Source of the DNA: Haliotis rubra
Taxonomy: Eukaryota
Length of the DNA stretch: 64,000 nucleotides
Reading direction: 5' to 3'
NCBI RefSeq assembly: GCF_003918875.1
Contig: NW_025766903.1
Span: 372,001-436,000, forward strand
The stretch's first letter is position 1. Each line of letters opens with the position of its first letter. Positions 18,121 through 61,634 of this stretch are shown in pieces. The notes beneath the pieces are model-generated. The model saw only the letters and a list, made by a program, of their open reading frames with translations, was not told the origin of the DNA and did no database searches. A program made the position numbers and the translations under genes.

Positions 18121-19647
18121 GCATCTCTCAGTAACAAGTAAGTCAAAGTGTGGTATAAAACGATTGGTACAGGAAGCAGTCATATTCGATAACCCATACA
18201 GGGCCACAGTTTCATAAATAAATTGGACCGAGACATACAGATAATACACGATGTGCACCAGGAAGTTTAACCCTGTGTTTGGATGCATCGTGTCAGAATC
18301 GTTGCACACCAATAAATATAAAACAATTTATAATGTTATAGGTTTTTTAGCAGCGTATTTGTTGTACGACTTGTGACTTACATATCAGCGTACGATAAAA
18401 TCTGTTCCGTTATCATAAGTGATTTAAGCAATAACATTGTCCATTGTAGGATTATATTTGTTAAAATGTTACATCGGTTTAATGCAATACGTCGATAACG
18501 TCTGGGTTAAAATTTCCTGAGCCAAACAGGAAACTTCCGTCTTGGGTAAAGCGGATCCCTTCTCCATAATGTGTTCATGTGTGTTGGTGTGCAAGTCACT
18601 CTAAGCAAAAACTGTGTTTACTGACGCTTGCTTACAAATCCAGTTTGTGCATTTTAAGCAGATATCCAACCGTCTGAAGGTCTGGAGAAGTATGAATACA
18701 TTACATGTTGTACAGAGACCTACTCTCCTTTCTGTTTCCACTGCCCCATTGGTTAATTGAAGAATTTAATCCTAAAAAGACATGGACATACATGGACATA
18801 TACTGACGTTTTATGGTAGCCTTTGCACATTACATGTAGTTTTGATCAGCATACAGTGCAAACAGTATAAAACAAATAACCTTAGATAATGAAGGATCAA
18901 AGGCGTATGTACGTCTTTGTGAAGGATCTATCAATACGATAACATGTTTCAAAATAACGGGACGCCCATCTTTACCTCACTCAGTAAAATATGCAAATAT
19001 GATTCTGGGGAACAAAAGTCGCCACCTGCGGCGTTACACAATGATCACTTAGTCACTATTAAGATATGGTTATGTTGAATTTTTACAATGCGAGCATGAA
19101 AGGAAAGCGACATACGGTTGGTGACGTTCTAATGCCCGTTGCAGCTTTGCAGTTCCTTAGTCCTGTCAAAATAACAAGAACGTGCATTAGAATACATTTT
19201 GTTCAAATGTGGGTTTGGAAACCCGATGACCCCCAAGTTGACAAGTGGGTTCAACAATTGTACACCTTCTTGTTCTGCATTTACTGGGACACATTTTATG
19301 TATTGTCCACTTGTCCAAGAAAAAATGAGTGACGCATGGTAGGCAAAGACACCAAAGTTGTTTTGTACTGACAGTTCATGAAGCTACAAGAGGTCCAAAG
19401 TGTTAGCTTACAATAACACAGTCATCTGAATGATTTTGCTGTGACGACCAGTTGTATAATTCAGCCTACAAGACAACACCATGCTGACGCTCACAACACA
19501 CAACACATGTGTTTACCTAAGAATACAGTGGCACACATTTTCAAATCAGCGTTTTGTTTGGTTTAAATGGTCAAGCATTGGAAAGCAAACGGAAATGGAA
19601 AAGTAGAACGGGGAAATATGTTATAACTTTGTGGACGTGTAGACATG

Positions 19648-22482
19648 TTTCTAGTGCAGTAAACGGTTTTACCTTCGTAAACGGTTCTAGTGTAGTAAAC
19701 GGTAGTAGTGCAGTAAACGGTTCTAGTGTAGTAAACGGTTCTAGTGCAGTAAACTGTTCTAGTGCAGTAAACGGTGGTAGTGCAGTAAACGGTGCTAGTG
19801 TAGTAAACGGTAGTAGTGCAGTAAACGGTTCTAGTGCAGTCAGCGGTTCTAGTGCAGTAAACGGTTCTAGTGCAGTAAAAGCAGTTTCTGTTGTAAACGG
19901 TAGTAAACGGTAGTAGTGCAGTAAACGGTTCTAGTGCAGTAAACGGTAGTAGTGCAGTAAACGGTTCTAGTGCAGTAAGCGGTTCTAGTGCAGTAAACGG
20001 TTCTAGTGCAGTAAACGGTAGTAGTGCAGTAAACGGTTCTAGTGTAGTAAACGGTTCTAGTGCAGTAAGCGGTTCTAGTGTAGTAAACGGTAGTAGTGCA
20101 GTAAACGGTTCTACTGTAGTGCAGTAAACGGTAGTAGTGCAGTAAACGGTTCTAGTGCAGTAAACGGTTCTAGTGCAGTAAACGGTTCTAGTGCAGTAAA
20201 CGGTAGTAGTGCAGTAAACGGTTCTAGTGCAGTAAACGGTTCTAGTGCAGTAAACGGTGGTAGTGCAGTAAACGGTGGTAGTGCAGTAAACGGTTCTAGT
20301 GTAAACAGTAAACGGTTCTAGTGCATTAAACGGTAGTAGTGCAGTAAACGGTTCTAGTGCAGTAAACGGTTGTAGTGCAGTAAATGGCAGTAGTGTAGTA
20401 AACGGTCCTAGTGCAGTAAACGGTTCTAGTGCAGTAAACTGTTCCAGTGCATTAAACGGTGGTAGTGCAGTAAACTGTTCTAGTGCAGTAAACGGTTCTA
20501 GTGCACTAAACGTTGCTAGTGCAGTAAACGGTGCTAGTGCAGTAAACGGTTCTAGTGCAGTAAACGGTTCTAGTGCAGTAAACGGTTCTAGTGCAGTAAA
20601 CGGTAGTAGTGCAGTAAACGGTTCTAGTGCAGTAAACGGTTCTAGTGCAGTAAACGGTTCTAGTGCAGTAAACGGTTCTAGTGCAGTAAATGGCAGTAGT
20701 GTAGTAAACGGTCCTAGTGCAGTAAACGGTTCTAGTGCAGTAAACGGTTCCAGTGCATTAAACGGTTCTAGTGCAGTAAACTGTTCTAGTGCATTAAACG
20801 GTGCTAGTGCAGTAAACGGTTCTAGTGCAGTAAACGTTTGTAGTGCAGTAAACGGTCCTAGTGCAGCAAACGGTTGTAGTGCAGTAAACGGTTCTAGTGC
20901 AGTAAACGGTTCTACCTTAGTAAACGGTTCTAATGCAGTAAACGGTTCTAGTGCAGTAAATGGCAGTAGTGCAGTAAACGGTCCTAGTGCAGTAAACGGT
21001 TCTAGTGCAGTAAACAGTTCCAGTGCATTAAACGGTGGTAGTGCAGTAAACTGTTCTAGTGCAATAAACGGTGGTAGTGCAGTAAACGGTTCTACCTTAG
21101 TAAAACGGTTCTAGTGTAGTAAACGGTAGTAGTGCAGTAAACGGTTCTAGTGCAGGAAACGGTCCTAGTGCAGTAAACGGTTCTAGTGCAGTAAACTGTT
21201 CTAGTGCAGTAAACGGTGGTAGTGCAGTAAACGGTTCTAGTGAAGTAAACGGTTCTAGTGTAGTAAACGGTTCTAGTGCAGTAAACAGTAGTAGTGCAGT
21301 AAACGGTTCTAGTGTAGTAAACGGTTCTAGTGCAGTAAACGGTTCTAGTGTAGTAAACGGTAGTAGTGCAGTAAACGGTTCTACTGGAGTAAGCGGTTCT
21401 AGTGCAGTAAACGGTTCTAGTGTAGTAAACGGTAGTAGTGCAGTAAACGGTTCTAGTGTAGTAAACGGTTCTAGTGCAGTAAGCGGTTCTAGTGTAGTAA
21501 ACGGTAGTAGTGCAGTAAACTGTTCTACTGTAGTAAACGGTAGTAGTGCAGTAAACGGTTCTAGTGCAGTAAGCGGTTCTAGTGCAGTAAACGGTAGTAG
21601 TGTAGTAAACGGTTCTAGTGCAGTAAACGGTTCTAGTGCAGTAAACGGTGGTAGTGCAGTAAACGGTAGTAGTGCAGTAAACGGTTCTAGTGCATTAAAC
21701 GGTAGTAGTGCAGTAAACGGTTCTAGTGTAGTAAACGGTAGTAGTGCAGTAAACGGTAGTAGTGCAGTAAACGGTTCTAGTGCAGTAAACGGTTCTAGTG
21801 CAGTAAACGGTAGTAGTGCAGTAAACGGTTCTAGTGCAGTATACGGTTCTAGTGCAGTAAACGGTTCTACCTTAGTAAACGGTTCTAGTGCTGTAAACGG
21901 TAGTAGTGCAGTAAACGGTTCTAGTGTAGTAAACGGTCCTAGTGCAGTAAACGGTTCTAGTGCAGTAAACTGTTCTAGTGTAGTAAACGGTGGTAGTGTA
22001 GTAAACTGTTCTAGTGCAGTAAACTGTTCCAGTGCAGTAAACGGTTCTAGTGCAGTTAACTGTTCCAGTGCAGTAAACGGTGCTAGTGCAGTAAACGGTT
22101 CTAGTACAGTAAACGGTAGTAGTGCAGTAAACTGTTCCAGTGCACTAAACGGTTCTAGTGCAGTAAACGATCCTAGTGCAGTAAACGGTCCTAGTGCAGT
22201 AAACGGTGCTAATGCAGTAAACAGTAATAGTACAGTAGACCCTGTTAGTGCAGTAAACCCTGTTAGTGCAGTAAACTGTTCCAGTGCATTAAACGGTGCT
22301 TGTGCAAAGAACGGTGGTAGTGCAGTAAACGGTTCTAGTGCAGTAAACGGTGGTATTGCAGTAAACGGTTTTAGTGCAGTAAACGGTGGTAGTGCAGTAA
22401 ACAGTAATAGTGCAGTAAACGTTTCTAGGGCAAAAAACAGTCGTAGTGCAGAAAACGGTTCTAGAACAGTAAACGGTACTAG
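19648..22482. repeat. 18-bp satellite (GTTCTAGTGCAGTAAACG), about 2.8 kb
   Basis: Direct inspection. Confidence 0.97.
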
Positions 22483-24490: not shown

Positions 24491-24762
24491 GTCAAATGGC
24501 CCATCATTGAAAGGTGCTTATAACGATACCCCTGTTTCAAGAATAGATACTTCTGGAAAACGTATTAACGACAAGGCACGTCATTAGTACAGTTATGAAA
24601 ACACGATGACACACGTTGTATTTTTCCATGTCGTATGGGTCGTCGTTACAACGTGTTCACAATAATAACCAGCTACAGAGCATGAACTTGTTTCTGTATG
24701 CAGGTTAAACTAATGTTATAAACCGAACTAACTGATTTTGTATGGTTTGTTCAGGAACCATC

Positions 24763-25128
24763 ATGGCGACACCGTACAGCATCCAGACCGGGGAGGCCAA
24801 GACTCTCGGTGTGTCGGACTTCCTCGTGTGTGGAGCCTCCCTCGCCTTCACCCTGGGTATAGGGCTGGCATTTGCCATAAAGAGCAGGAAAAGCCAGGAC
24901 CCGTCAGAATTCCTCGTGGCCGGAAGGAGTATGGGCGTACTTCCGGTAACCTTGTCCTTGGTTGTCACGTTCATTTCAGCGTTGACCTTATTAGGATTAC
25001 CCACTGAGACGTACATCCACAGCACCATGTTCTGGTGGTTGGCCCTGGCTATGCTGGTCGCAGTGGCAGGTTCAGCTCACATCTTCAACCCGGTCCTGCA
25101 TAATCTCGGCATAACAAGCGCTTACGAG
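24763..25128 (+). CDS. SLC5 sodium-coupled monocarboxylate transporter-like gene 1, coding exon 1
   Basis: ATG 24763; EFLVAGRSM..PVTLSLVVTFISALTLLGLP.E SSF motifs; ends SAYE|gt; acceptor TTCAG at 24754 implies an upstream UTR exon. Confidence 0.95.
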
Positions 25129-25379
25129 GTAAAAACACATGCAGTATTTTGATACAAAAAGTGGATATATTAAATTATGCAAAATATGTATCATGATACA
25201 TGTAGTGTCGAAATGGCATGTTTATTTAAAATATTTAAACGATATTTCACTTCAAACTGAAATGGCATCATAAAATATCAGTTCATGCCGTGAGTACGTT
25301 CTGGGCGCGTCTATGACATATTTCAGACTGAATATTGAGAAGCTATACATACCATTGTACCGTCTATGCTAATCACTGC

Positions 25380-29454: not shown

Positions 29455-32400
29455 CAGACAGACAGACAGACATATTGTTTATAATAAGTCTCACCTCATT
29501 TACAGAAATTAAAACAATATAAAATAAAAACATAAGATGAGCCACCATTAAAAGGATTATGAGAGACTATTTACACATAAAATTATACAGAATATAAATA
29601 TAATGATATATGATATAATAAAATTTACATATGTTAACAGACTAATGTTAAAGTTGGCGGCGTCGTTCCTTTAAAACATCAGAGCAGGTCTTGGCTGTTA
29701 ATTTACTTAAAATGGACTAGACATTATAAACAAAAACTTTTCCACATCTGTAAAATTGATAAAGTTATTGTCTAGAAATTGGCACTTATCCAGCAAACAT
29801 TTTGTAATAGACTATAGGACACAATACAAGTACATGTATTTCATCTTCAACAACATTCAAACAATTACAACACACCCTCTCATCCACAGGCATATTACTA
29901 AAACGTCCAGTTTCTATTGGTAAGGGGCAACACCGCATCTGAACATAGCTAAAGCCCTTCTGTGTCCTCGTGGTATGTGTTCTGTAACATAATGCTCTGC
30001 TCCATAGTCTATCTTAAAGGCTCTGTATAATCGAAGTTTATTACCTCCCTTGCCATCTCGACCAGTCGGACAATCTATTTTCTTTTTCTATTCATTAAAA
30101 CATTTTTCGTGTACTGCTTCCTGGACTGTGTGCACAATTTCCTTCCTCCGTAATCCATTATCAACTTCTGTCAAATCAGTCAAGTCTAGTGATGACAGTT
30201 GCAGGTGTAAGCGCTTTATCCAGTTTGTTTTCTTTCTTGAAGCCATCTGTTTTGTCCAGTTAAACATCTTATAAGTCAGTCTGTCTGTGTTTAAGCAATG
30301 AAGTCAAGTGTACATTCTCATGAGAGAGCCCCAGAGTTTCACTGGTGTAGGTGTCCATCCCATGTCTCCTGTCACTGCAGCGTTGGGGATAGATTTCCGC
30401 ACTCCCGTATATAATTTCATAGCTCTGTTTTGTACAGTCGTTGCGTATGTACAGTTTGAGGTCCCCCAAATCGCTGCTTCGTAGTCAACTGTCGACCAGA
30501 CCATGGCGTCAAAGAGTTTCCTGTATGTGGGGTAGTGCATACCGCCCATGGACTTGAATTTAGAAATCAGTAGACCCAGCGCTCGACCTGCTGAACTAGC
30601 TACAACCTTGGCCAACCTTGCGTAGTCTAAGTGTTCTGTTATCAATATGCCTAAATAACAGTAACTGTCTATTGACGTAGGACCACACTGAAAAGCACAA
30701 GTCGTTCTTGGCATATTTACAGGTCTACAGTGTAGAACTTTTGATTTATCCGAGTTTACAGTCATGAAATTGTCATCACACCAGTTATGTAAAATGGTTA
30801 AAAGTACTTTTAGGTCCTCTTCATCTTCAGCTAACAGGACCAGATCGTCTGCATAAGCTAGCACAGTCAGTGTTTCGTCAATAAACTTCACACCAATATT
30901 GAAACTGTTTATGGTAGTTATCAAATCATTGATGTAAACGTTGAATAACAGAGGGGAGAGAAGGCATCCTTGTTTAAGCCCACACTTGACGTTAAACCAT
31001 TCAGTCATATTTCCATTTATTCTGACACAACTCTTCACACTCTTGTAAAGGGAGATAATAGCTTCATACATCTTTACAAAGATTCCAAGATCAGACAGTT
31101 TTTTCCACAATATAGACCTATCAATATTATCATAAGCCTTTGTAAAATCTATGAATGCTAAAAACTTCGATTTCTTTAAAGATTTACGAGTTTCCACTAT
31201 GGATATGAGTGATGATATATGTTCTACTGTGGACCTGCCCCTCCCTGGTTTCTGTATACTTGTACAGTCTTGTATTCAGCACCGAACAGTACAGTTTATA
31301 GCTTGAATTTGTCAAGGAGATACCTCTGTATGATAAAGGGTCATATTTATCAGCACATGATGACTTCGGGATAGGATTGATGATACTCATAGCCCATTCA
31401 CTCGGTTTTTTCCCACTAGCAAAACACGTGTTAAAATGTTTATGTAAAAACTTTATACTGGTATTATTTTTCAAAATCTCAACAGGTATGTTGTCACATC
31501 CTGGTGATTTCCCTTTCCTCGCTGATAGCACAACTTCATTCACTTCATCCAACGTGAAGGGGTTATTGAGCCGAGATGTATAGTCGTCTGCGTCGGTTAC
31601 CTCCCTTGGCTCCTGTGCAGAAATGAAAACCACATCAGAGTTACCGTTATTTAACAGATTACTGTAACTGTCTTTCCATGTATTCAACACGGTTTCCTGG
31701 TCCCCAGACAAAGTACCATCAGGAAGTCTCACCTCAGTTGGAATAATGTGAATTCTGTTAAAACCAACTCCAACTTTTCTTATCTTTTTCCAAAACTCAT
31801 TTTTATTTTCCTCACAGAGATTTTCCAATCCTTATAAACTATCTTTGTTGTAGCGTCGTTTACATCGTTTAGTTTCTTTATCAAAAACAGTCCTCTTCTT
31901 GGCATACAACTCTCTTAACTTCCGTTTGCGAACGTTATTACATCTGCACCATTCACTTTCAGCTCTACACAGTTTCAGTCCACCAAGCTTTCTTCCACAA
32001 CTACTTTCTCTTATTTGGTCCCCAGATGAATGTCACATGTTTTTGTGGCAGCGTTGACTCGATTTCCTGCTCAACTGTAGTTAGGAAGTTAGTATAGGCT
32101 ACATCCACATCCGATTGTTCACAGAGTGACAACTCCAACTTGGATATAGTGTCATTAAGAATCTGTACACACAATGTAGAGTCTAAAAAGGATTCAGGCA
32201 CACATGTGACGTCATATCTCACACATGACACACTGGGCTGAGTACTGTTACCTATGTCATCCAGGTTCCAACGATGAAGTTCGGGGGGAATTTCCATGTT
32301 CCATGTCAGTTCGGAATGGTCTAATTTAGTAATAGCCTGTGCACTCACAAATCCCACACAGTTAGCTGACTCAACTAAATCACATACCGGTGTAACACCA

Positions 32401-32845
32401 GAATTAGAAATACGATTAAAATCTTCATATGCACATAAACAATAGTCAACGACAGAGTCCCCATTGCCTGAAATACAAGTAAAATCATTTTTTTCATTTT
32501 TTCTCCCATTTACCATACAAAAATTTGAATTTATCAAAAATCAGCTAAAAGATGTCCATAACGGTTTTTCGTCGCATCAATAACTTCTCTGCTTGGAAGC
32601 GAGTCCACACCCTCAATGTGATCTAGGACGTCGCCACATCTGCTGTTTAGATCACCACATATATAACCAATATTATACACATGGTACTCAGATATCTGAG
32701 TGAGGAGATTGTCATAAAAATCAGATGCATCAATATTTCTTGTAGAATACTCTGGGGTTAAATAACACACACAGATGCAAAATAAACATGTACTGTCAGA
32801 ACATTCGATGGATGGGAGATAAATATATCCTACGTCACACAATGG
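29455..32845 (-). mobile_element. 5'-truncated, frameshifted APE-RT LINE in SLC5 intron 6
   Basis: Minus-strand ORFs: GDLNSR, VVDY (EN); FIDFTKAYD, GLKQGCLLSP, AYADD (RT); (TGTC)n 3' tail near 29455. Confidence 0.9.
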
Positions 32846-35743: not shown

Positions 35744-36074
35744 GTGAGTATTAGATCATCCCTGGGTCCGTCCCGAAGTTCCCGACAACAGCACAACGTG
35801 TAGTTGGAAGACGAGGTTAGTTTGCGATCAACCTTACTTTATCAGTCGTGTCCAGTTCGTGTTACACAGTATGGACGGGTAGTGTCGGTCTCTTTGACAA
35901 CATTGGTAGTTAGATCCCTCGGTTCCAGATAATGTCACGTGGTGTAGATGAGTAAGGTAACTATGAAATCATATTGCTGAGATCACTCGTTTCTAGTCAG
36001 ACGCACACGGAGTGGCTGTTAAGTGTAGGTCTCTATGAGATTATCCGTACTTAGATCGGCGTCATACCTTGTGT

Positions 36075-36830
36075 TGACCAAGTACAGGTTCCTATTGGTA
36101 TCACCTGGTGTAGACCGGAAGTATAGGTTCCTGTTAGCGTCACCTGGTGTAGAACGGAAGTACAGGTTCCTGGTAGCGACACCTTGTGTAGACCGGAAGT
36201 ACAGGTTCCTGTTAGTTTCACCTGGTATAGACCGGAAGTATAGGTTCCTGTTAGCGTAACCTGGTGTAGACCGGAAGTACAGGTTCCTGTTAGTGTCACC
36301 TGGTGTAGATCGGAAGAACAGGTTCCTGTTAGTGTCACCTGGTATAGACCGGAAGTATAGGTTCCTGTAGCGTCACCTGTTCCTGTACAGGTTCGTCACC
36401 TGGTGTAGACCGGAAGTACAGGTTCCTGTTAGTGTCACCTGGTGTAGACCGGAAGTACAGGTTCCTGTTAGTGTCACCTGGTGTAGACCGGAAGTACAGG
36501 TTCCTGTTAGTGTCACCTGGTGTAGACCGGAAGTACAGGTTCCTGTTAGTGTCACCTGGTGTAGACCGGAAGTACAGGTTCCTGGTAGCGTCACCTGGTG
36601 TAGACCGGAAGTACAGGTTCCTGTTAGTGTCACCTGGTGTAGACCGGAAGTACAGGTTCCTGTGTAGCGTCACCTGTTAGCGTCACCTGGTGTAGACCGG
36701 AAGTACAGGTTCCTGGTAGCGTCACCTGGTGTAGACCGGAAGTACAGGTTCCTGGTAGCGTCACCTGGTGTAGACCGGAAGTACAGGTTCCTGTTAGCGT
36801 CACATGGTGTATAGTGAAGTACAGGTTTGT
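36075..36830. repeat. 39-bp minisatellite (GTCACCTGGTGTAGACCGGAAGTACAGGTTCCTGTTAGT)
   Basis: 13-aa periodicity in overlapping ORFs. Confidence 0.95.
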
Positions 36831-37607: not shown

Positions 37608-37800
37608 ATCTAAATATAGCACAAATCTAAATATAGCACAAGTCTAAATACAGAACAAGTCTAAATATAGCACGTCTAAATGTAGCACAAGTCTAAATAT
37701 AGCACAAGTCTAAATATAGCATAAGACTAAATATAGCACAAGTCTAAATACAGCACAAGCCTAAATATAGCACGTTTAAATGTAGCACAAGTCTAAATAC
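37608..37800. repeat. 17-bp minisatellite (TCTAAATATAGCACAAG)
   Basis: Direct inspection. Confidence 0.9.
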
Positions 37801-37875
37801 TGACATGTCTTGACTATCATGTTTTTGGAATATCGGCTATATCACTCTGTTATGACATGGGTGTTTGTGTCACAG

Positions 37876-38051
37876 GGGGCTATCTGTGGCTATATGGCCA
37901 GCCTTGCCTTCACGACGTGGATCTCTGTCGGAGCATATGTCAATGGCGTCACAGGCCCAAGATTACCCTTGTCTGTTCATGGCTGCAACTGGAACGTTAC
38001 CAACACCACGATGCCAACTACCACCTTGCCCCACACAGCGTCTCCTGAAGA
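37876..38051 (+). CDS. SLC5 gene 1 exon 12
   Basis: GAICG..WISVGA..LPLSVHGC with NVT and NTT sequons; GA|gtaggt, 176 bp. Confidence 0.92.
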
Positions 38052-38080
38052 GTAGGTGTACTTCATCTTTGATTCATTAC

Positions 38081-39649
38081 TTAGAGAATAACCAACGAGG
38101 TACGAGTGATTACGGGAAATATGCCCGAGCTGAAGTAATGTTCACAGTGCCGAGCCTTGGCGAGTTGAAGTAATGTTCACAGTGCCGAGCCTTGGCGAGT
38201 TGAAGTAATCTTCACAGTGTCGAGCCTTGGCGAGTTGAAGTAACCTTCACAGTGTCGAGCCTTGGCGAGTTGAAGTAATGTTCAGTGTCGAGCCTTGGCG
38301 AGTTGAAGGAATGGTCACACTGTCGAGCCTTGGCGAGGAGGCACTGAACATTATTTTAACGAGGGCATATTTCCCGTAATGACTCGTACCGAGTTGGTTA
38401 TTCTATTTATTACACATAATGTAATTTAAAAAGAAGAACCACGAAATAAAAAAACACCTGGAGACAGACTTGTGGCCTCAAACAGCTGATTCGTATTCCT
38501 GCGCGTATTAAATTCCAGCGGTAATAACATTACTACGCTATGGAAAATAGTACCATGTAATATCGCTTTAAAATACAACAAAATATTTTTTAGGGAATAA
38601 TTTATTAACATTTGTTAATATGATAAAATCGATCTTTTAAGTGCAACATCACTGAACGTAATAACAGCTAAAACGTTATTTGATAAAGTCAGTGCGCCGG
38701 AACATCGTTCATTCACGACTGACGTGTGTCTAGTGACGGGCTGACGGTGTAGTGTTGAAACACACTTTGGCAAAAACCTGTCAGCTTGGAGGAAAGTCAA
38801 CGGTTAAAAGTTAGGAAATCTTAAAGACAACCATTCCACGAATTCATCTAGAAAAGGTTTTCTGTCAACAAACCCAACAGGTTTAAAGATTAAACAACAT
38901 ATTGTTCTGTGGAAGGCGTGTTACAGTCACGCCATTGGTCCCAGTACAGTACAGCAGTTCCAAGAAGGATAACTCTAGTCGGAATCCAAGTCAATGTCAG
39001 TTTCTGCATCGGAGACTGGGACAAACCTCTCGGATTGATTACGAATGCGTGGATAAAAAAATCCTTTAGCACTGATTCCAATAGGAAAGAAGCTGTTTTC
39101 TGGTTCGATAGCATGGACGCCGTGGCAGATCGACTCACTTGTCACACTTGAGGTAACGCCTTTACTCAGTATCTTGCTAATTCTATTTCCCCGAATTCAG
39201 TTTTAACAGTGTTAACAAACAGGTTGTACGAATTCAAGGGCTGTAATATTCTTATCAGTCTTCGTATTAGGGTTAGTGATCGGGGTTAGCCTAATGGCGG
39301 CCATGTTTGTTTACAATGCAAACGATTGTTTTGGTTTTTTCAAGGTTATTTATTTAAAAAAGACTACTATTTATAACGCAATTTTATTGCAAATAATGAT
39401 GTCTAATAAAAAGAGTATTCATATTCTTTAACTTTTATGTCTTCTTTTTTAAATCTCGGAATGTGTGAGTACAGCACGTTCTAATTATCAATGAAACGTT
39501 GTCAATGAACTTGAATCATGAAAAGTAGTTCCGTCAACCAATCATAGTTCTTCCCTGCTTAGCTGACAAATCAACGTTGACAATCACTGAAAAGCACATG
39601 TGCGATTATCACTAAATCACCTGTGTATCCTAGCCCGAATGGGTAATAA
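38081..39649. mobile_element. Probable non-autonomous Crypton-related element (terminal palindrome 38085-38404)
   Basis: Long imperfect palindrome with the same GA-mismatch grammar as the adjacent recombinase element; TTATTACAC (38407) ... GGGTAATAA (39641) inverted pair. Confidence 0.55.
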
Positions 39650-42440
39650 GTATAGGTTAGCGACCCTCTGAGGGGTGATATGGATTTCAACGCTCGAGGC
39701 GCAGCCGAGAGCGTTGAATCCATATCACCCCGCAGAGGTGTGTCGCTAACCGTCATACACTATGTGGACTACACTTTTCACTTGCGTGGTAGATGACTTA
39801 CCTTTTTCCTAATGGTATCGTCCATATATCGCCCCTAGGTAGATATCAAACCAATTAAATGTACTCTGTGTGCTCGTGATTGCGAACATTCGTCAAAACG
39901 TAACCTGTCCATGCCATGATCTCTAACGACCATGTGCACGCTTTTTCCGAGCATATCAATGCAGTTGTGTGTGTACTTAGTGAACCTGGGTGACAGTCGT
40001 TGGCAAACATTACTAGTAGGATCATGCTTTCTGACGAGTCTGATGAAGAATTAGTTCATGCGTCCCAAGTCATAGAGTCCCAGCTTGGTATAGAAAAAAC
40101 TGCAACAGGTGAGCGTTTTGTTGAAGCGAATGATGATGAAGTTTCAAATCGTGCATTGGAGGTTATACCTACAAACACTCAACGCCGAGACAAATTTGCT
40201 GTTAACACTTTTCAAGCATGGCTATAGCTATGAACAATCGCCGAAGTTCACACAGAAAGTTAACCTGCACATTAGAAAGCATGTCAGAACAAGAACTGGG
40301 GAATTTCATGTCTAAATTTGTCGTTGAGGTTCGGAAGCAAAACGGGGAGCCTTACCCACCAAAAACACTGCTGCAATTAGTAATGGGGATCCAGTCTCAA
40401 ATTAAACTACAAATCAAGAGAAATGTGCATTTTCTACAAAAAATGAAGCCTTCGAAGAATTTCACCAGGTTCTTGATGGGGAAATGAAACGATTAACACG
40501 TCGTGGTCTGGGTCAGGAAGTTAAAAAAGCCGAACCATTCACAGAACGGGAGGAAGAGTGTCCGTGGAAGTCAAAACAATCAGGAGATCACAATCCAAGG
40601 GTACTGTTGCATACAATTCTGTATTTGAATGGAAAGAATTTCAGCTTACGTAGTGGTCAGGAGCACAGGCAACTGAAATATGTGAACTCGCAGATTTCTC
40701 TCAGGAAAGATAACACAGGGCGAGAATAGTTGTTTTATCGAGAAGACTATTCCAAAACTGTACAAGGTGGGCTACAACATAGGAAACTCAACCCGAAAGA
40801 AGTCAAACACTACCCGAGTTTGAATCCAGAGAGATGTCACGTAAGGCTCTATAACAAGTACCTCTCCCTCTGCCTTACCGACGGCCATGATGATGCCTTT
40901 TATCTCCAGGTTTTGCAGTCGCCCACAGACAAATGCTGGTAAAAACCTTTCAGCTATATCTAACATATACATGTAAAGATTATCACTTACTGTTATTAAT
41001 TATGATTTAGGAAGTAATGTTGCCCAGTACTATTCTATACTGTTTTGGTTTAAGTACTAGTATTAAATTGTATTACAAAATAGTACTTTCGAATTCGTAC
41101 CTATTAATTTAGTAGTAATTATCTAATTATGATTTGCATATATATAATTTAAGTAACTAATTTAGAGAAAAATATTTTAAATTGACAGTCGAGTGTGTTA
41201 AACATAATTACCAGAGAAAGTAACGTCAGAATCGATCAAGTCATGTGATGTTCCATTGTTAAACTTTCGCCCGAGTTGGTATGTCCTTAATAAATGTCTG
41301 TGATTGGAAACTTCTGTCATTTCTTCCAGTATTTTGCTAATGTTACTAAAATGCGTATTTTCAGGTACAGTAGGCAGCCCTTAGGACATAACACGCTGCA
41401 GAAGATTGTTCCCGAGATGTGTGCCAGGGCGGGTATTCAAGGTTATAAAACCAATCACTCGCTACGTGCTACAACGGCTACAAGACTATACAATGCTGGT
41501 GTAAGTGAACAGCTCATTATGGAGCGTACTGGTCACAGAAGTGTTAGAGGTTATGTTATACTGAATATTCTATAACTCCAAAAGCCGATTTTAAAGTACA
41601 AAAATGAATAATTTACCGTGAAGGTAAAATGCAGTCTTTTTAAATGTTTCAATATAAAATATATATGTAAAATATGTAACAGATGTGTAACAGGTAAGTT
41701 TTAACTTTTATAAATTGTCTCTTTTTTCAAAATAGGGGTCCGTAGTTACACGAGGACGAGCGAGGAGCAGGAGAGTATGGTCAGTGATATTCTTAATACC
41801 GACCCTGTTTCTTCTGATAAGGATTCTGAGCTGACTGCAGTAACCGAGACAGTAACTAAAGAAGCCGCCCAGATGGGTAGGAACACTGCCCCTGAAACAT
41901 CAACTATTGCGGTACCTCGGTCCGCATGTCCAGAGCTTAGATTCGAGAACTGTGTTGTCAATTTAGTTATGAAGTGAACACTGACAATAAATAAAATGTA
42001 ACACATTGTGTTTTCTTTCCTAATTTGTTGTGTGTTGCGGTTAGGACTCTTTCCACAGTATTAAAGTGCTGAATTTTTCTTTATTAGTTTGAACACTTCC
42101 AATACACGTGCCGGGGTTACTATATGGAGATTACTTCTTACGTGCCTTAAGTTTCGAAAATTCCATCCTTCGTCTCCAACGGCTATCTTACAGAGGGAAT
42201 TTTCGAATATTGAGCATTATTCGAAAATTCCCGATGTTCGATATCGAGTGAAGATACCTACGATTCCGAGGCGAAGCCGAGGAAAAGTGAGGTATCTGCA
42301 CGAGAACACATCTTATTTGTATACAGCGGTGAAAACAAATATACCTCCACATAGTAACCTCCGCACGTGAGGTTTTGGTGTAGCTATGGAAAAAATCAAC
42401 CTGTTGAAACAATGGAGATATCATACCCTAGTGGTGTATT
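39650..42440 (+). mobile_element. Crypton-type tyrosine-recombinase DNA transposon in SLC5 intron 12
   Basis: Recombinase gene flanked by palindromes centred on CGAGGCGCAGCCGAG (about 39700) and CGAGGCGAAGCCGAG (about 42270); limits approximate. Confidence 0.8.
40024..41977 (+). pseudogene. Crypton tyrosine recombinase (DUF3504/ZMYM-QRICH1-like), 3 exons: 40024-40938, 41365-41549, 41736-41977
   Basis: EVRKQNGEPYPP, LRSGQEH, SKTVQGGL, W|YSRQPLG, NHSLRAT, TGHRS, VRSY; GT-AG introns in phase; two frameshifts (about 40220, 40440) and TAG at 40727; AATAAA at about 41987. Confidence 0.88.
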
Positions 42441-42597: not shown

Positions 42598-42698
42598 GGA
42601 CAATTACCTCAGCATCTACCGATTGTCATTTTTGTACTACACGGCGTCTGGGGCCATTGTCAACGTTACCGTAGGCGTGGTCGTGAGTCTAATCACAG
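42598..42698 (+). CDS. SLC5 gene 1 exon 13
   Basis: DNYLSIYRLSFLYYTASGAIVNVTVGVVVSLIT, 101 bp. Confidence 0.93.
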
Positions 42699-43123
42699 GT
42701 ACAACGCCAGTGGTTTGAAAGCCAAGAATGGGTAGCGTTTCAGAAGTCCATTAATAATACTTACAACACATAGAATACTGTCTAAATATATTCACATAGG
42801 AGTCTCACAGAGATCTTTATTTGTAATGACTGACAAACCCAACCGACAGTAACGTCTGATTTGGACAGAACGCTGTTGAGTTTACATCATTGTTACAATA
42901 GGAGCATTATGGTTTGGACAGAACGCTGTTGAGTTTTCGTCATTGTTACAATAGGAGCATTATGGTTTGGAGTGAAAAAATGAAATTATCGGATTATCTT
43001 TCCACGATTAAAAGCTAACAGGCCACGGCTGAAGACTCCACCCTTCAGGACAAAGGCCTATTTGCCAACAGCACTGAATTACCTACAGCATCAGTTACAA
43101 CCCTCTGTTACCTCTCCCTTTAG

Positions 43124-43230: not shown

Positions 43231-43520
43231 GTAGGGGACGACTCGGGGGCACTGTGCAACTTGTACCTGATTGGCGTCAAGACTGGCTATATGTAACACT
43301 AGTTAAATACAAGTATCACTTTGACTTCCTGCAGCTGTTACCTGTCAATAAAGGTAAATAAAGAAAACCTGATCAGCTAATTGACAAATAGACACGTCCA
43401 CATAGGCACCATGTTATCTTGGTATAGCTGGACTCCGGGAGAAACCAGGCATATTACTCCATATTAACTTCGTGCTGAACACATGTACAGTCAAACTGAT
43501 TGTATGTTCCTGTTCTATAG

Positions 43521-45003: not shown

Positions 45004-46298
45004 TATTTCAACCAGAAATTATTGAGAATTTAAAGATTGTATTTTTTTTTTCCACTCATTACTCACGTATTAAATGTGAATATTAGCAGAACATAACTCC
45101 AGATTCAAAGACAGGTGAACAGTTAGTATTTTGTCAAGTCACCATGGGCAGTTATGCAGGCTTCAATGCGGCGGGCATACTACTGATCAAAGAAGTTAGA
45201 AAGTCGTGGTCCATGCTGTCCCACTATCGGACCATCTCTTCTTTCATTTCAGCAATATTTGTCAGATTTTTCTTATTGACACTTTCCTTCATAAGTCCCG
45301 AAACATTTTCTATTGGATTTAGGTCAGGGCTATAGCTTGGCCAATCTAATAATGTCATATTTTGGGTCCGAAACCAGGCCTGTGAATGCTTTGAACGATG
45401 TTTTGAGTCGTTGTCCTGCTGGAAAATCCAAAAATTTCCCTAGAACACGTGAGCAGATGGAAGTAACTGTCCCTCGAGAATATCTGTGTACCGCTCATTG
45501 TTCATATTTTCCTTCAAATACACAGAGGGGCGTTGCCCCTAACACAGATATGCCACCCCACACGTTAAATTTCGGACTGTACTTTGGGCGCTGATACAAA
45601 GGTTTATCAGTTTGTTTGGTCCAGAATTTCAGTGTCTTAGGAAACAGCCACACAGAACTTTCATCTGAGAAAATCACATTGTCCCAGTTAAAATTTCTAT
45701 GCTGTAAGCACCAGTTTAACCTTCGCTCCTTTTGTTCAGGTTTCATGATCGGTGATGGAATTCCTCGACTTTTCTGCCAAACCATTGCATGCAGATCAGT
45801 TCTTATTGTCTCCTTACAGACAGCCACAGTTCCTCTATCAATCATATCCAACCTTACGTTTTCTAAACTCCTTCGTTTGTTTTTAGAAACAAGAACACCA
45901 AGCCGCCTCCTGTCACCGACAGTCAATTTTCTGGGCCTACCTGCGCCTCCCTTGTGCTCAATGCCATATCCACTTGCAACATTTTTCAAAATACGATAAA
46001 CAGTGGACAAACGGATGCCTGTTCTACTTGAAATCACTTTAGCTGATCTGATGTCCTTGTTATAATACTCTAAAATCAACTTCCTCTTCTCTAAATCATC
46101 CATACTGAGGATCACTGAAAATGTCGTCCGCTAGCAAGTAAACAAAGGGAGATAACTCTTCACAAACTAATGAAAAAGGATTAACGGAGTTGTCTCTCTT
46201 GAAAGAAACCAAGCACTTGATAGCTGGTCAAGGTTGTTTATACTAGAAATCCAATTAAACATATTCCTAAAATTCTCAATAATTTCTGGTCATACTAT
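45004..46298 (-). mobile_element. Tc1-family transposon, frameshifted transposase
   Basis: TIR core ACCAGAAATTATTGAGAATTT at both ends; ORF 45495-46115 with IFSDES, then FQQDNDSKH and WPSYSPDLNPIEN in another frame. Confidence 0.9.
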
Positions 46299-51530: not shown

Positions 51531-53047
51531 TACTAGGCACATAAAGCAACTGTGCATACAAGAATTTAAAATCTAAATTTATCAAACCTGTGTAGACACA
51601 TAAGGATTTAAACTCAGAGATTGGTGACATGTTTCCAACATGCATGCACGTGCCACGTTCCGTGACGTCAGTGGGTTCGTCCTTGAGACGTGCAATACGT
51701 TGTTACACGTGCATTCCGTTAAAGAGAAACAGAGCAAATGAATGCCACACAATACTGTCACTTTGGAAAGCTCAACCCCTGCCCTGCCCTTGCGATCGTT
51801 CAAAAAATTAAACGGCTATTGAAACGCATAGCATGCCAAGGCTCACGTCTGCACAACGTCATGAAGCCATTTGGATGGTCAGTGGGGGAATGTCTCAACG
51901 ACAAGTGGCTGCACATTTCCACTGCCACCGGAACACCATTTCTGCACTGGTGAGACGCTACCAGAACACAAATGACGTCATCGATCGGCCACGTTCTGGA
52001 CGTCCACGTGTAACAACGCCAAGACAGGACAGATGGATAAGGGTGACCCATCTTCGCCACACGTTTCAGACTGCAGTGATGACTGCCCGAACCATCCTAG
52101 GACTTCGCCGTATCCACCCCAACACAGTCCGACAACGTTTACGTCATCACGGCATCAGACCACGACGTCCCGCCATACGACCTATCCTGACACAACGTCA
52201 TCGACAAGCTCGCCGAATGTGGTGCCGAAATCATGTCGGCAGACCCTTGTTTTGGTCGAGAAATGTTGTTTTCACAGATGAGTCCAGGTTTAACATTTCC
52301 CATAGTGATGGACGTCAACGTGCCTATAGACGCGTGGGAGAACGTTATGCAAAGGCCTGTGTCTTGGAGAGGAATCGCTTTGGTGGTGGTTCCGTGATGA
52401 TTTGGGGTGGAATAACAGCACGCCAAAGAACTCCTTTGGTGATTGCTCAGGGCAACTTAACTGGTGTGGGCTACAGGGATCAGATTCTTCGACCTGTGGC
52501 AATTCCTTTTCTGCAAGGTCATGGCCCTGGGTTAACATTCCAACAGGACAATGCCCGCCCTCATACGGCAAGGGTTGCTATGGATTTCTTGCAACACCAC
52601 AACGTTGACTTACTGCCTTGGCCTGCAAATTCACCGGATCTCTCCCCGATAGAGCATGTTTGGGACAAGATGGATCGACGTCTACGCCGTCTTCCTCATC
52701 CGCCAGATAACGTCCTTGACCTTGCAACAGATCTTGAGAGAATCTGGCGTGACATCCCACAAGCCTTCCTTGCACGTTTGATAGGCTCTATGCGTCGTCG
52801 ATGCACTGCTGTTCTCAATGCCGATGGTGGACATACCCATTATTGAGCTTGTGACATGGTCGTTTGACCCCTGTCCCGCTTGTGGACTCGTGACGTCATT
52901 GTGATTGACTTTTCAATTAAAATTCTCCCGACTTGTTATGGTCTTATGATCCCTCCATTAAAGTTTATATGTACCTTTGACATTGTTATCGTACTTATCA
53001 ACTGGGATAATATTTTGACAATACACAGTTTCTTTATGTGGCTAGTA
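51531..53047 (+). mobile_element. Intact Tc1 (DD34E) transposon
   Basis: 27-bp TIRs (3 mismatches), TA TSD at 51529-30 and 53048-49. Confidence 0.93.
51833..52846 (+). CDS. Tc1 transposase, 337 aa, uninterrupted
   Basis: Paired-like HTH, GRPR, FTDESRF, FQQDNARPH, SPDLSPIEHVW; 34 residues between second D and E. Confidence 0.95.
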   Translation: MPRLTSAQRHEAIWMVSGGMSQRQVAAHFHCHRNTISALVRRYQNTNDVIDRPRSGRPRVTTPRQDRWIRVTHLRHTFQTAVMTARTILGLRRIHPNTVRQRLRHHGIRPRRPAIRPILTQRHRQARRMWCRNHVGRPLFWSRNVVFTDESRFNISHSDGRQRAYRRVGERYAKACVLERNRFGGGSVMIWGGITARQRTPLVIAQGNLTGVGYRDQILRPVAIPFLQGHGPGLTFQQDNARPHTARVAMDFLQHHNVDLLPWPANSPDLSPIEHVWDKMDRRLRRLPHPPDNVLDLATDLERIWRDIPQAFLARLIGSMRRRCTAVLNADGGHTHY

Positions 53048-53949
53048 TAGATTGAAAACATGTTAACAAAAGGGCACAGTCATTTTATAAACACCACCTT
53101 GTAAGAACAAAATTTTGCATTTGGTTTTCAAAGGTGACGCTACTTTTGCGGTTGAGTATATAACACGTGGGATATTGTAACCCATTGACTATCGCTGATA
53201 CATTACAGCTTACAGCCGCATATGTTGCCGTGCACTAACACGAACCGCGAGCATGACATATTCTATCTTCTGTTTTGTTAATGTTTTATTGATTGTCAAG
53301 TTAACGCTCTTCTCCTGATATCTGACACTTCACAAAGTAAAGACCCACACTAAACGTGATGGTAAACCTGGTCAAGGAGAACATCTTGGTATCATCATAG
53401 TGATTCATAAACACATTATCACGTTATAGTCGAACATGTACAATCCACTAATTCTAGCGAGAATGGGGAGGGTTTTGTCACTTTATGTAAGGAACTCGCA
53501 GTGTGCAAATAGTCGAATTACTGCTTCTCATGGAAACTTTCGTTGATCAGTGACCAACAACATATCCTGACGAGGAGAATCTTATCGCTCCCCCGCTCTC
53601 TCACTCACTCACTCACGCACTCACTCCATTCAGCCAGTATTGGGAAGGATGGCTGGATGGCAGATATTTTTTAAATAGACCAGGGATGAATTGTAAACAG
53701 TCGGATGAGTTGTCCGACTTTGTGATTCCTGCTATAATATCAGGTCATGAGGGAGGTTTATTACACTTACTTGTTATAGATCAACTATATCATCGGGATA
53801 TTCTCTCCGCTCAAACCACCTGGACAACCCAATCTGTGTGTATGCCGTGTGATATATTCCTGACACAGTGGGGTGGACACACAAGCAAGTAGACTGAACT
53901 ACGTCTGTGTAGATCTTACCTCCAGGATAGCGAACAGGCACCTGGACAG

Positions 53950-54812
53950 ACAGCACACAGGCAGACGGTTGGGCAGACAGAAAGGTAGATTGGATCTTCC
54001 TTAGCAGACAGCGCACAGGCAGACAATTGGGCAGACAGAAAGGTAGGTGGATCTTCCTTAGCAGACAGCGCACAGGCAGACGGTTGGGCACACAGAAAGG
54101 TAGGTGGATCTTCCTTAGCAGACAGCGCACAGGCAGACGGTTGGGCACACAGAAAGGTAGGTGGATCTTCCTTAGCAGACAGCGCACAGGCAGACGGTTG
54201 GGCACACAGAAAGGTAGGTGGATCTTCCTTAGCAGACAGCGCACAGGCAGACGGTTGGGCACACAGAAAGGTAGGTGGATCTTCCTTAGCAGACAGCGTA
54301 CAGGCAGACGGTTGGGCAGACAGAAAGGTAGGTGGATCTTCCTTAGCAGACAGCGCGTACAGGCAGACGGTTGGGCAGACAGAAAGGTAGGTGGATCTTC
54401 CTTAGCAGACAGCGTACAGGCAGACGGTTGGGCAGACAGAAAGGTAGGTGGATCTTCCTTAGCAGACAGCGCACAGGCAGACGGTTGGGCAGACAGAAAG
54501 GTAGGTGGATCTTCCTTAGCAGACAGCGCACAGGCAGACGGTTGGGCAGACAGAAAGGTAGGTGGATCTTCCTTAGCAGACAGCGCACAGGCAGACGGTT
54601 GGGAACAACAGACAGAAAGGTAGGTGGATCTTCCTTAGCAGACAGCACATAGGCAATAAAATTGGCAGACAGAAAGGTAGGTGGATCTTCCTTAGCAGAC
54701 AGCACACAGGCAGACGGTTGGGCACACAGAAAGGTAGGTGGATCTTCCTTAGCAGACAGCGCACAGGCAGACGGCTTGGCAGACAGAAAGGTAGGTGGAT
54801 CTTCCTTAGCAG
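53950..54812. repeat. 63-bp minisatellite
   Basis: 21-aa periodicity in overlapping ORFs. Confidence 0.95.
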
Positions 54813-58751: not shown

Positions 58752-58804
58752 TACCAGGTGCATATCTCTGTGTACCAGTGTGAGTCCTTGGTGGCATTGT
58801 GACT

Positions 58805-59956
58805 TGTGCCTGTGTGTCTCAGTGTGTGTCTGTGTGTCACAGTGCGTTTCAGTGTGTGCCTGTGTGTCTCGGTGTCTGTCTGTGTGTGTCTCAGTGTGTG
58901 CCTGTTTGTCTCAGTGTGTGTCTGCGTGTCTCAGTGTGTTCCTGTGTGTCTCAGTGTGTGTCTGCGTATCTCAGTGTGTGCCTGTGTGTCTCGGTGTGTG
59001 CCTGTGTGTCTCGGTGTGTGTCTGCGTATCTCAGTGTGTGCCTGTGTGTCTCGGTGTGTGCCTGTGTGTCTCAGTGTGTGTCTGCGTGTCTCAGTGTGGG
59101 CCTGTGTGTCTCAGTGTGTACCTGTTTGTCTCAGTGTGTGCCTGTGTGTCTCAGTGTGTTCCTTTGTGTCTCAGTGTGTGTCTCGGTGTGTGTCTGCGTA
59201 TCTCAGTGTGCCTGTGTGTCTCGGTGTGTGCCTGTGTGTCTCAGTGTGTGTCTGCGTGTCTCAGTGTGTTCCTGTGTGTCTCAGTGTGGGCCTGTGTGTC
59301 TCAGTGTGTGCCTGTTTGTCTCAGTGTGTGCCTGTTTGTCTCAGTGTGTGTCTGCGTGTCTCGGTGTGTGCCTGCGTGTCTCAGTGTGTGCCTGTTTGTC
59401 TCTGTGTGTGTCTGTGTGTCTCAGTGTGTGTCTGCGTGTCTCAGTGTGTGCCTGTTTGTCTCAGCGTGTGTCTGCGTATCTCAGTGTGTGCCTGTGTGTC
59501 TCGGTGTGTGCCTGTGTGTCTCGGTGTGTGTCTGCGTATCTCAGTGTGTGCCTGTGTGTCTCGGTGTGTGCCTGTGTGTCTCAGTGTGTGTCTGCGTGTC
59601 TCATTGTGGGCCTGTGTGTCTCAGTGTGTGCCTGTTTGTCTCAGTGTGTGCCTGTGTAACTCAGTGTGTGTCTGCGTGTCTCAGTGTGGGCCTGTGTGTC
59701 TCAGTGTGTGCCTGTTTGTCTCAGTGTGTGCCTGTGTGTCTCAGTGTGTGTCTCAGTGTGGGCCTGTGTGTCTCAGTGTGTGCCTGTTTGTCTCAGTGTG
59801 TTCCTTTGTGTCTCAGTGTGTGTCTCGGTGTGTGCCTGTGTGTCTCGGTGTGTGTCTGCGTGTCTCAGTGTGTTCCTGTGTGTCTCAGTGTGGGCCTGTG
59901 TGTCTCAGTGTGGGCCTGTGTGTCTCAGTGTGGGCCTGTGTGTCTCAGTGTGTGTC
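58805..59956. repeat. 20-bp TG-rich minisatellite (CCTGTGTGTCTCAGTGTGTG)
   Basis: Direct inspection. Confidence 0.96.
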
Positions 59957-61162
59957 TTTGCAAATGCTGATTTATCTTGATACGGTCTGATTACATGTTA
60001 GTTTTAGTCCATAACTCCGCGAAAAAGTCCATAAATTGCACCCATAAAGCACCCTGTTGGAGTGACGGACTGACGAGAGGTATTGGACGTTAAACATAAC
60101 CACTGAAAATGACAGGGATTATATATACATAATCCCTGGTTTTACATATTCATTTTAACATATAAACACTGGATTACAATTCAGAAGCCAGTAATGGCGA
60201 TGTTGTTTCACTGATATTCTTACCAAGCAAGATTTACTGAGTATCGGTATCAGCACTCACACAACGCACGAGTGATTCCTTTAGTCTTGGTTGAGAGGGA
60301 GTTGCAGTGTTGGGCTCTGCAGTTCTAACATCTTCGACATATCCGGATATTGAGGTCTGTGATTAACCTAGATTCATACCTGTTCGTACCAAACACACAG
60401 AGCCTTCAGATTGCTGTCACCCAGACCACACATACCTCAGTAAGACACAATAAGATTCAGGCTGCAGTGAGCTTCGTTTAGCTAATATTTGGGAAATTAG
60501 TCTATTTACATTGCACATCTGGAAAGCACATCTGAGAACTCAGTCACGTTGCATATCACGTACACGTCACATTGATATGGGCATCATTTTGTATGTGTTT
60601 CACGGAGCCACCAAATTCTAATCATGGGTCGGTCGGTCGGGGGAAAAAAAGAAAAAAGAAATTAATAAAGACTGTATTGACTCGTTGACTCATTGACTGT
60701 AATTCGTATTACAATTTTGGACTTGTGGCAGCAACTGATAAGATATACATTTTATATGACGAGACAGTACGTTTAAGGTTCGAGTCGGCGGTGTTGGAAT
60801 GAAGAAGTCTTTTGGGGTCCGGCAATAAAATTAGAAGGGTCGGTCGGTCGATTAGAAACACAAAAAATACGAATGCTGCCCTACATGTGAAACACGTGTG
60901 CCTCATTGTTAGGAGGTTAGATCTGTCCAGCATATCGTCAGAACACTAACTCAGAAAAGGTTGATCGTCTTGTATGCAGTTTAGAGGAAAGCAAATGGTC
61001 ATTCAGACATCACCAGTAATGGCAACATTCTTCTTTACATAATTACTTGAAATATGCATTTTGATATGTAATATAAAAGAGGGAAAACATTTGTTTGAAC
61101 GTGTTACTTATTATGAATTGTGTTTTCATTTTAACATCAAATCGGCGCCATAAAGAAGCAGT

Positions 61163-61528: not shown

Positions 61529-61634
61529 GTAATGCATGACACATCCCTCCGTCTTTTTGTATATATAAATTGTTTTGCATAAAAAAGAACTAACCAAATA
61601 CGATCTAAATACCATTCTTGCCATTATATTTCAG

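Follow-up and report, generated by a model that had tools for sequence, protein, structure and literature searches.

Hairpins with strand-specific tandem G.A loops at a CryptonA-type element and a neighboring abundant repeat in Haliotis rubra

The 64,000-nucleotide stretch of Haliotis rubra DNA analyzed here (called the window; NCBI RefSeq assembly GCF_003918875.1, contig NW_025766903.1, positions 372,001 to 436,000 of the forward strand) contains two mobile elements lying head to tail. One is a decayed transposon of the CryptonA type with a tyrosine-recombinase pseudogene. The other, directly before it, is a very abundant non-coding element that we call the A-element. Hairpin A heads the A-element and hairpin B the Crypton, as its 5′ terminal hairpin, and a further palindrome, hairpin C, lies in the 3′ part of the Crypton. 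Positions are collected in Table 1, those of the window being numbered from its first letter.

The recombinase gene is clearly decayed. It has at least two in-frame stop codons (40225-40227, 40727-40729) and two frameshifts (near 40220, near 40485), and the catalytic-region motif HSLRAT...GHRSVRG/VRSY is legible across the second intron. Comparison of its open reading frame (ORF) pieces with Pfam gave matches to QRICH1 (1e-10), DUF3504 (3.5e-15 and 5.5e-07) and Phage_integrase (5e-11), and this combination indicates an element of the CryptonA type. No reverse-transcriptase domain was found by Pfam in the ORF pieces of the gene between the hairpins.

The first-pass annotation of this DNA had described three palindromes with a common grammar of CGAG facing CGAG. 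Direct reading of the sequence, repeat finding and DNA folding all bear this out, including the coordinates and the mismatches. Each palindrome is imperfect, and the mismatches are mostly tandem G.A and A.G on the plus strand, placed between a C:G pair and a G:C pair. Each apex conforms exactly to c-GA-(3 GC base pairs)-loop-GA-g, the loops being TT, GCA and GAA. The numbers of CGAG/CGAG blocks given for B (one) and C (two) are correct. Three had been given for A, of which two are present in the arms (GA at 38097/38391 and 38127/38361), and 38102-38105 is normal CGAG/CTCG pairing. The apex region of A comprises six copies of a 35-bp tandem repeat (38126-38337), each with CGAGCCTTGGCGAG. Copies of A differ in the number of these units, and many contigs omit 141-236 nt inside A. 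In hairpin B an outer 4-bp stem is formed by pairing of 39650-39653 with 39755-39758. B and C have the apex CGAGGCGNAGCCGAG in common, and its only two occurrences in the 64 kb are these apexes. The inner palindrome C1 was absent from the earlier description. No further copies of A, B or C were found within the window.

Among the tandem mismatches within palindromes of the whole window GA/GA accounts for 4 of 13 and TC/TC for none, in a scan that overlooked the two of hairpin C. The chance expectation for one mismatch type of 144 is <1%, so the bias toward G.A in these palindromes is not a matter of chance. Decay of CpG, named earlier as a possible source of the mismatches, is excluded because conversion of CTCG to CGAG requires T>G and C>A. 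The accompanying proposal that only the plus strand folds well was overstated. Both strands are predicted to form long hairpins, with -45.1 vs -43.6 kcal/mol for B and -13 vs -11 kcal/mol for C, and the nearest-neighbor difference between the strands of the hairpins is 1.5-6 kcal/mol. As modeled with nearest-neighbor parameters, the strand asymmetry is local, and not all-or-none.

The boundary between the two elements is seen in sequencing reads. Contigs from four public DNA runs were aligned to 38000-42400 at 80% likeness. In run X1 the summed depth over 38000-39616 is 5,000-66,000, declining within 39617-39763 to ~250-900 across 39764-42400; single-copy contigs have a depth of ~130-250. The Crypton region (39764-42400) has a depth ~2-4x single copy, and that of the A-element (38082-39616) is 20-200x higher in the four runs. 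Forty to 41 contigs part from the window sequence just before 38081. One contig matches through 39649 and then enters unlike sequence, and another matches only rightwards of 39646. The drop in depth and the contig breakpoints show that the A-element and the Crypton are separate, two hairpin-headed mobile elements that abut at 39649/39650, and not the single transposon region of the first-pass annotation. The Crypton starts at ~39650, 5 nt ahead of hairpin B. The A-element is probably a non-autonomous hairpin-headed element. Its ORFs have no relatives in the protein collection, and those spanning hairpin B are likewise without a match there.

There is no gap between the 3′ end of the A-element and the 5′ hairpin of the Crypton. 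Comparable head-to-tail hairpin units occur at two of the related loci described below, where unit 1 of L002 is followed by a hairpin at 10611-10763 and L004 has tandem hairpins at 7471-7659 and 7801-7980. Such contacts would fit integration aimed beside resident hairpins, which we offer purely as a suggestion.

A query with the integrase exon returned 123 short relatives, with ≤73% identity, from which 11 loci in at least seven assemblies were fetched (designated by L numbers). They were analyzed by palindrome scanning with mismatch typing, by folding and by motif scanning. In 10 of the 11 a hairpin of 100-190 nt with G.A/G.A loops lies directly upstream of the recombinase gene, the exception being a gene fragment from Lottia. 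The grammar upstream of these genes supports the earlier assignment of the hairpins to the recombinase element for B and C; A belongs to a separate element. In all of the 18 hairpins (18/18) the G.A/G.A loops are on the sense strand of the gene, minus-strand genes showing TC/TC on the plus strand. Hairpins downstream of the gene were seen in the window and L002 only, among all loci examined.

The 18 hairpins contain 34 2x2 loops. GA/GA makes up 25 of these and GA/AA three; TC/TC does not occur on the sense strand. Several kinds of pair close the loops, including CGAG/CGAG, CGAA/TGAG, GGAG/CGAC and AGAG/TGAT. A stricter census of 2x2 loops with 4+4 exact flanking pairs was dropped, being noisy in low-complexity DNA and missing loops adjacent to the apex. 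Along the stems of L002, L006, L008 and window hairpin A the G.A loops are spaced by ~20-31 nt, often ~25 nt, and this regular spacing could mirror a repeated binding unit.

Three heptamers, GCGAAGC, GCGCAGC and GCGTAGC, or degenerate versions of them, form the apex, with GA...GA flanks in most hairpins. The extended motif GA-(G)GCGNAGC(C)-GA occurs 10 times in 194 kb, and seven of the 10 are hairpin apexes. A 290-bp repeat in L002 (2222-2510 and 7892-8181, 96% alike) has a minus-strand mini-hairpin GGC-GA-GCGCAGC-GA-GCC, that is the same apex grammar without the long stem. At the stem base the 5′ side is TATAGGTTA or TTAGTTA in 14 of 16 hairpins, and the 3′ side is usually TAAC. Hairpin B belongs to the class of 5′ hairpins found in L007, L010 and L011, which have the TATAGGTTA start in common.

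Other palindromes in the fetched loci have no G.A bias, barring two. One at L004 11131-11317 was flagged with a single TC/TC, unconfirmed by eye, and the other at L001 10561-10685 is a weak low-GC palindrome downstream with one GA/GA. A foldback element resembling a miniature inverted-repeat transposable element (MITE) is present in L007 (4292-4659) and L001 (4273-4532). Its 131-nt arms are 99% alike and without G.A loops, and the L007 copy is inserted directly upstream of the L007 Crypton. Ordinary palindromes of these genomes are thus without the grammar.

Outside these motifs the arm sequences are unrelated between families, yet they covary. In two three-way alignments double compensatory changes are found at 32 of 68 and 19 of 59 predicted pairs. 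G.A loops are kept at most aligned positions, and one is normal CGAG/CTCG pairing in one copy. The same data bear on the possibility that the palindromes are foldback or MITE debris, in which G.A/G.A loops survive as the sole low-cost mismatch. In stability, sheared tandem G.A pairs come close to Watson-Crick pairs, and at certain positions a relative has Watson-Crick pairing in place of G.A, for example L002-H2 in alignment A4. However, to derive GA/GA from a paired site takes two adjacent transversions in one arm. Moreover, the preponderance of GA/GA among the loops, their aligned positions in hairpins that are ~70% alike, their location flanking a conserved apex and their confinement to one strand relative to the gene make an origin as debris scarcely credible.

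Table 1. Positions of the elements, hairpins and associated features in the window and at the related loci.
Sequence	Feature	Position	Strand	Remarks
Window	A-element	38082-39649	+	~1.57 kb, very abundant, non-coding, headed by hairpin A
Window	Hairpin A	38085-38404	+	60-nt arms 38085-38144 / 38345-38404, 87% complementary
Window	TTATTAC	38407-38413	+	2 nt past hairpin A base; complementary to A-element 3′ GTAATAA
Window	GTAATAA, A-element 3′ terminus	39643-39649	+	read-based breakpoint 39646-39649; complementary to 38407-38413
Window	Decayed CryptonA-type element	39650-42355	+	low-copy, intron-bearing; 5′ end well supported, 3′ end inferred
Window	Hairpin B	39655-39751	+	97 nt; base GGTTAG...CTAACC; one CGAG block; apex GGCGCAGCC; z -13.7
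Window	Post-hairpin segment ACTATGTGGA	39759-39768	+	pairs with putative 3′ end
Window	Tyrosine-recombinase pseudogene	40026-41977	+	two introns, ~40943-41365 and 41552-41737
Window	Composite 3′ structure	42105-42369	+	outer inverted repeat 42105-42129 / 42345-42369 (25 nt) around two inner G.A hairpins
Window	Inner palindrome C1	42184-42243	+	15-bp perfect stem and AGAG/CGAT G.A/G.A loop
Window	Hairpin C	42245-42304	+	two CGAG blocks; apex GGCGAAGCC; fold -13 kcal/mol, z -4.2
Window	Putative 3′ terminal segment TCCACATAGT	42346-42355	+	complementary to 39759-39768
Window	SLC5-like sodium/solute transporter exons	37865-38050, 42598-42700, 24742-25152, 61163-61582		
L001	Hairpin	8615-8759		
L002	Hairpins	8515-8649 and 19538-19698		
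L004	Hairpins	10678-10844 and 7804-7980		minus-strand genes, TC/TC on plus
L006	Hairpin	4789-4922		
L007	Hairpin	4719-4818		
L008	Hairpins	3699-3855 and 8530-8688		
L009	Hairpin	4030-4173		
L010	Hairpin	3789-3893		
L011	Hairpin	4062-4159		

The hairpin is at the 5′ end in both families where copies were comparable. Similarity between three homologous L004 hairpins begins exactly at the outer stem base. L007 and L010 are of the same family at different loci. Their similarity begins 4-5 nt ahead of the hairpin and stops at GTGGTACAA, which is the reverse complement of the segment 2 nt past the hairpin. An exact 10-13 nt complement of the post-hairpin segment occurs 160-380 nt past the gene end in L001, L007, L008, L010, L011 and the window Crypton, and L006 has a weaker complement of 9 nt. 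The recombinase is the sole Pfam-recognizable gene between the hairpin and the putative 3′ end in these ~2-kb units.

The 3′ complement in the window, TCCACATAGT, sits 368-378 nt past the stop codon, inside the range of six other families. With the 5′ end at 39650 the pairing extends via GTAT/ATAC to give 14 contiguous pairs across the junction, which coincides exactly with the read-derived breakpoint. The sequence AGTA is found at 39649-39652 and again at 42353-42356, where the 3′ copy is at the putative end and not at one defined by copies. The A-element has the same end layout as the Crypton families, with its 3′ GTAATAA pairing with the TTATTAC that follows hairpin A. As the 3′ end is complementary to the post-hairpin segment, joining of the ends would lengthen the stem and place the junction inside the helix. 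L004 and the hairpin C composite hold the whole palindrome in one piece. Two other candidates were rejected. A direct repeat of 39759-39792 and 42117-42146 was not above shuffled controls, and a second 10-nt complement at 43396-43405 was attributed to chance, lying beyond the host exon at ~42598-42700 and having no extension.

A structured leader at the 5′ end of the recombinase mRNA, or a small-RNA precursor, would also be placed as the hairpin is, without exception ahead of the gene and on the gene's sense strand. Tandem G.A pairs are known in RNA too, and Rfam gave weak microRNA-like matches to B and C1, all of them sub-threshold, far under the gathering scores and on both strands. The hairpin begins 4-5 nt from the element end, however, so it is out of reach of an internal promoter. 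It also heads the non-coding A-element and stands alone at L008 2602-2700 and L004 hp2, and its complementarity to the 3′ end has no rationale in RNA. The terminal position, the occurrence at the head of a non-coding amplified element and in isolation, and the completion by the other end argue for a cis-acting DNA site that serves in mobility, and not for an RNA leader.

The motifs themselves are of a DNA type. The CGAG block has been solved by nuclear magnetic resonance in DNA hairpins (PMC10085684), and GCGNAGC DNA mini-hairpins melt at 70-76 °C, the RNA versions being far weaker, so the GNA triloop mini-hairpin is a DNA-specific stabilizer (PMC13037366). The sequences here are identical motifs, with C-GA-G facing C-GA-G and GCG(A/C/T)AGC at the apex. 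Their setting is different, as the motifs have been described in oligonucleotides, in a human promoter and in phage origins, and not in transposon ends. These motifs favor folded DNA over RNA, and action as RNA seems to us quite improbable.

Phage origins, including that of phage G4, and the plasmid ssiA origins have mini-hairpins of the GCGNAGC type where single-strand priming takes place (PMC13037366). The hairpin might accordingly be a single-strand initiation signal, priming the complementary strand on a circular single-stranded DNA intermediate, and not a recombination site. Its strand specificity would fit such a role. The conserved base motif and the junction inside the stem suggest instead a site of cleavage and joining. 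We know of no tyrosine recombinase that makes single-stranded circles, which also counts against a priming signal, and we regard this explanation too as quite improbable.

Taking together the observed anatomy, strand rule, conservation, covariation and element boundaries, we consider it fairly probable that the hairpin is the 5′ terminal cis-acting site of the Crypton and its recombination site, acting in a folded or extruded form, and that A is the same head on an element mobilized in trans. A Crypton of this lineage begins with an imperfect palindrome of 100-190 nt having a conserved base, usually TAG(G)TTA...TAAC, and arms that may vary freely provided that pairing is kept. The internal loops, of the form Y-GA-R / Y-GA-R (tandem sheared G.A pairs, or CGAG blocks), number two to four and are always on the coding strand, and most such hairpins are capped by a GCGNAGC-type DNA mini-hairpin, intact or degenerate. 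The final 10-14 nt of the element are the complement of the post-hairpin segment. On joining of the element ends, as in the proposed Crypton excision circle, the stem would become longer with the junction in the helix. The long palindrome would then be the recombination site, its sense strand being used in folded or extruded form while the recombinase acts at the stem base. The G.A loops and the apex may mark strand and orientation, like the extrahelical bases of integron attC sites. Hairpin A is the same type of head on an abundant non-coding element, probably mobilized in trans, and C is an additional complete palindrome of this class in the Crypton 3′ region.

A number of points weigh against this assignment. 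Hairpin A has no sequence in common with B, and its only link to Cryptons is the grammar. The Crypton 3′ end at 42355 is placed by the complementarity rule and AGTA, and it is crossed by the outer inverted repeat of the composite 3′ structure. No joined-end complement was found in L004, L008b or L002-H1. By nearest-neighbor energies the sense strand is favored by a mean of only 2.5 kcal/mol, in 14 of the 18 hairpins. That circles form, that the hairpin folds in vivo and that the recombinase recognizes it, by binding or cleavage, are proposals based on sequence features. Lastly, the opposite strand shows the Helentron/HINE plan, in which a subterminal inverted repeat is combined with a 3′ palindrome (PMC4067079).

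The last point suggests that the hairpins could be terminal palindromes of rolling-circle elements of the Helentron/Helitron2 type, moved in trans by a Rep/helicase, with the recombinase as cargo or neighbor. In Helentrons, HINEs and Helitron2 the terminal segment is likewise an inverted repeat of the segment beside the terminal palindrome, there is no target-site duplication, and none is seen here; very abundant non-coding members occur in molluscs (PMC4067079). Internal tandem repeats are optional, as in A (PMC4067079; PMC8969392). The explanation gains weight where hairpin A is considered by itself, as no gene accompanies it. However, the gene here is a tyrosine recombinase and the hairpin is on its 5′ side. 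No Rep/helicase ORF or Pfam match was found in the window or in ~130 kb of the fetched loci. Across at least eight diverged families, drawn from several assemblies, the place and strand of the hairpin are fixed relative to the recombinase gene, and this is not accounted for if the gene is a passenger. The topology of the plan is found, on the opposite strand, with a palindrome of 100-300 nt (100-190 nt for the hairpins), compared with the 5-10 bp palindromes of described HINEs; those here are ten times longer and have the G.A grammar. Helentrons insert within TT and have T-rich termini. A T opens the 5′ ends here (TTAG.., TATAGG..), but ..GTAATAA/G at the other end of the A-element does not fit. 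A Helentron origin is therefore unlikely, and we retain the assignment of the hairpin to the Crypton.

Both transposons sit in an intron, formerly ~270 bp, of a gene for an SLC5-like transporter, with its next exon at ~42598-42700. A tandem gene pair is suggested by two similar SLC5-like first exons that lie 36 kb from each other. Directly ahead of the elements are a 39-bp tandem array (36066-36827, ~19 units, with higher-order periods of 117/131/170) and a 17-bp tandem array (37609-37799, 11.5 units). The remainder of the window has an uninterrupted Tc1/mariner-type transposase ORF of 337 amino acids (51833-52846), a partial second one on the minus strand (45495-46115), and two elements resembling long interspersed nuclear elements, with endonuclease and reverse-transcriptase ORFs (4267-8292 and 30304-32537). 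Long tandem or low-complexity arrays with repetitive ORFs in several frames occupy 53774-54623 and 58780-59990.

The ends and the mechanism of Cryptons have been an open problem since 2003, and reviews give a direct repeat of a few bases as the only landmark. The window element resembles CryptonA elements (Goodwin 2003; Kojima and Jurka 2011) in having a single tyrosine-recombinase gene with QRICH1, DUF3504 and integrase domains, no reverse transcriptase, and apparently neither terminal inverted nor long terminal repeats. The autonomous form is low-copy and its non-autonomous relatives are far more abundant, and the 4-bp AGTA is a possible direct repeat at the ends. It differs in the long strand-asymmetric 5′ hairpin and in a 3′ end complementary to the segment behind this hairpin. 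Palindromic ends had been cited for Crypton-derived repeats in the first-pass annotation. We could not trace such a report, and animal Cryptons are described as without terminal repeats, their boundaries hard to define (PMC3212892). A 2022 curation guide gives a short direct repeat as the sole Crypton end feature (PMC8969392), and a 2026 paper on CryptonA (Glomhopper) mentions neither hairpin nor palindrome (PMC13465315). No literature on Cryptons with hairpin, palindrome or stem-loop ends was found in a search that lay outside Repbase reports and subscription papers. Provisionally, the terminal hairpin is apparently new for Cryptons.

At integron attC and CTX-phage attP(+) sites tyrosine recombinases act on folded single-stranded DNA. 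These sites too are imperfect palindromes in which structure is kept but not sequence, with strand-specific non-Watson-Crick features and units head to tail, and the crossover near the stem base has its counterpart in the one proposed here. The hairpins of the present loci have the combination of conserved structure, free sequence and strand specificity that typifies attC, as seen in their covariation and in the sense-strand placement of the loops. They differ from attC in several respects. The element is eukaryotic, and its strand markers are 2x2 tandem G.A loops where those of attC are extrahelical bases. The base is TAG(G)TTA...TAAC, in which the order of the arms is the reverse of that in the attC boxes RYYYAAC...GTTRRRY, and the stem length is two to three times that of attC. 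Neither the attC R″/R′ box consensus nor the extrahelical bases were found in these hairpins, and we draw the analogy on a conceptual level only. DIRS1-type elements have a related kind of recombinase and an internal segment complementary to the joined ends; the element here differs in having no reverse transcriptase and no inverted terminal repeats, and in its ~2 kb size.

The conserved terminal structure gives exact boundaries for Cryptons, a route to their non-autonomous partners and a concrete substrate for biochemistry. It also flags a likely source of misclassified mollusc repeats. It is quite possible, if short of probable, that a widespread animal Crypton lineage uses as the substrate of its recombinase a folded strand-specific hairpin in which CGAG blocks are combined with a GCGNAGC apex and the stem is completed by end joining, and that part of the mollusc repeats filed as Helentrons are mobilized by Cryptons. 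If so, some hairpin-ended, duplication-less non-coding mollusc repeats now filed as Helentron-like would be Crypton-mobilized. This would be the first eukaryotic counterpart of single-strand recombination of the attC or CTX type, and if the fold is the substrate, a compact ~2 kb system of one recombinase and one structured site would be at hand and single-strand tyrosine recombination would reach from bacteria to animals.

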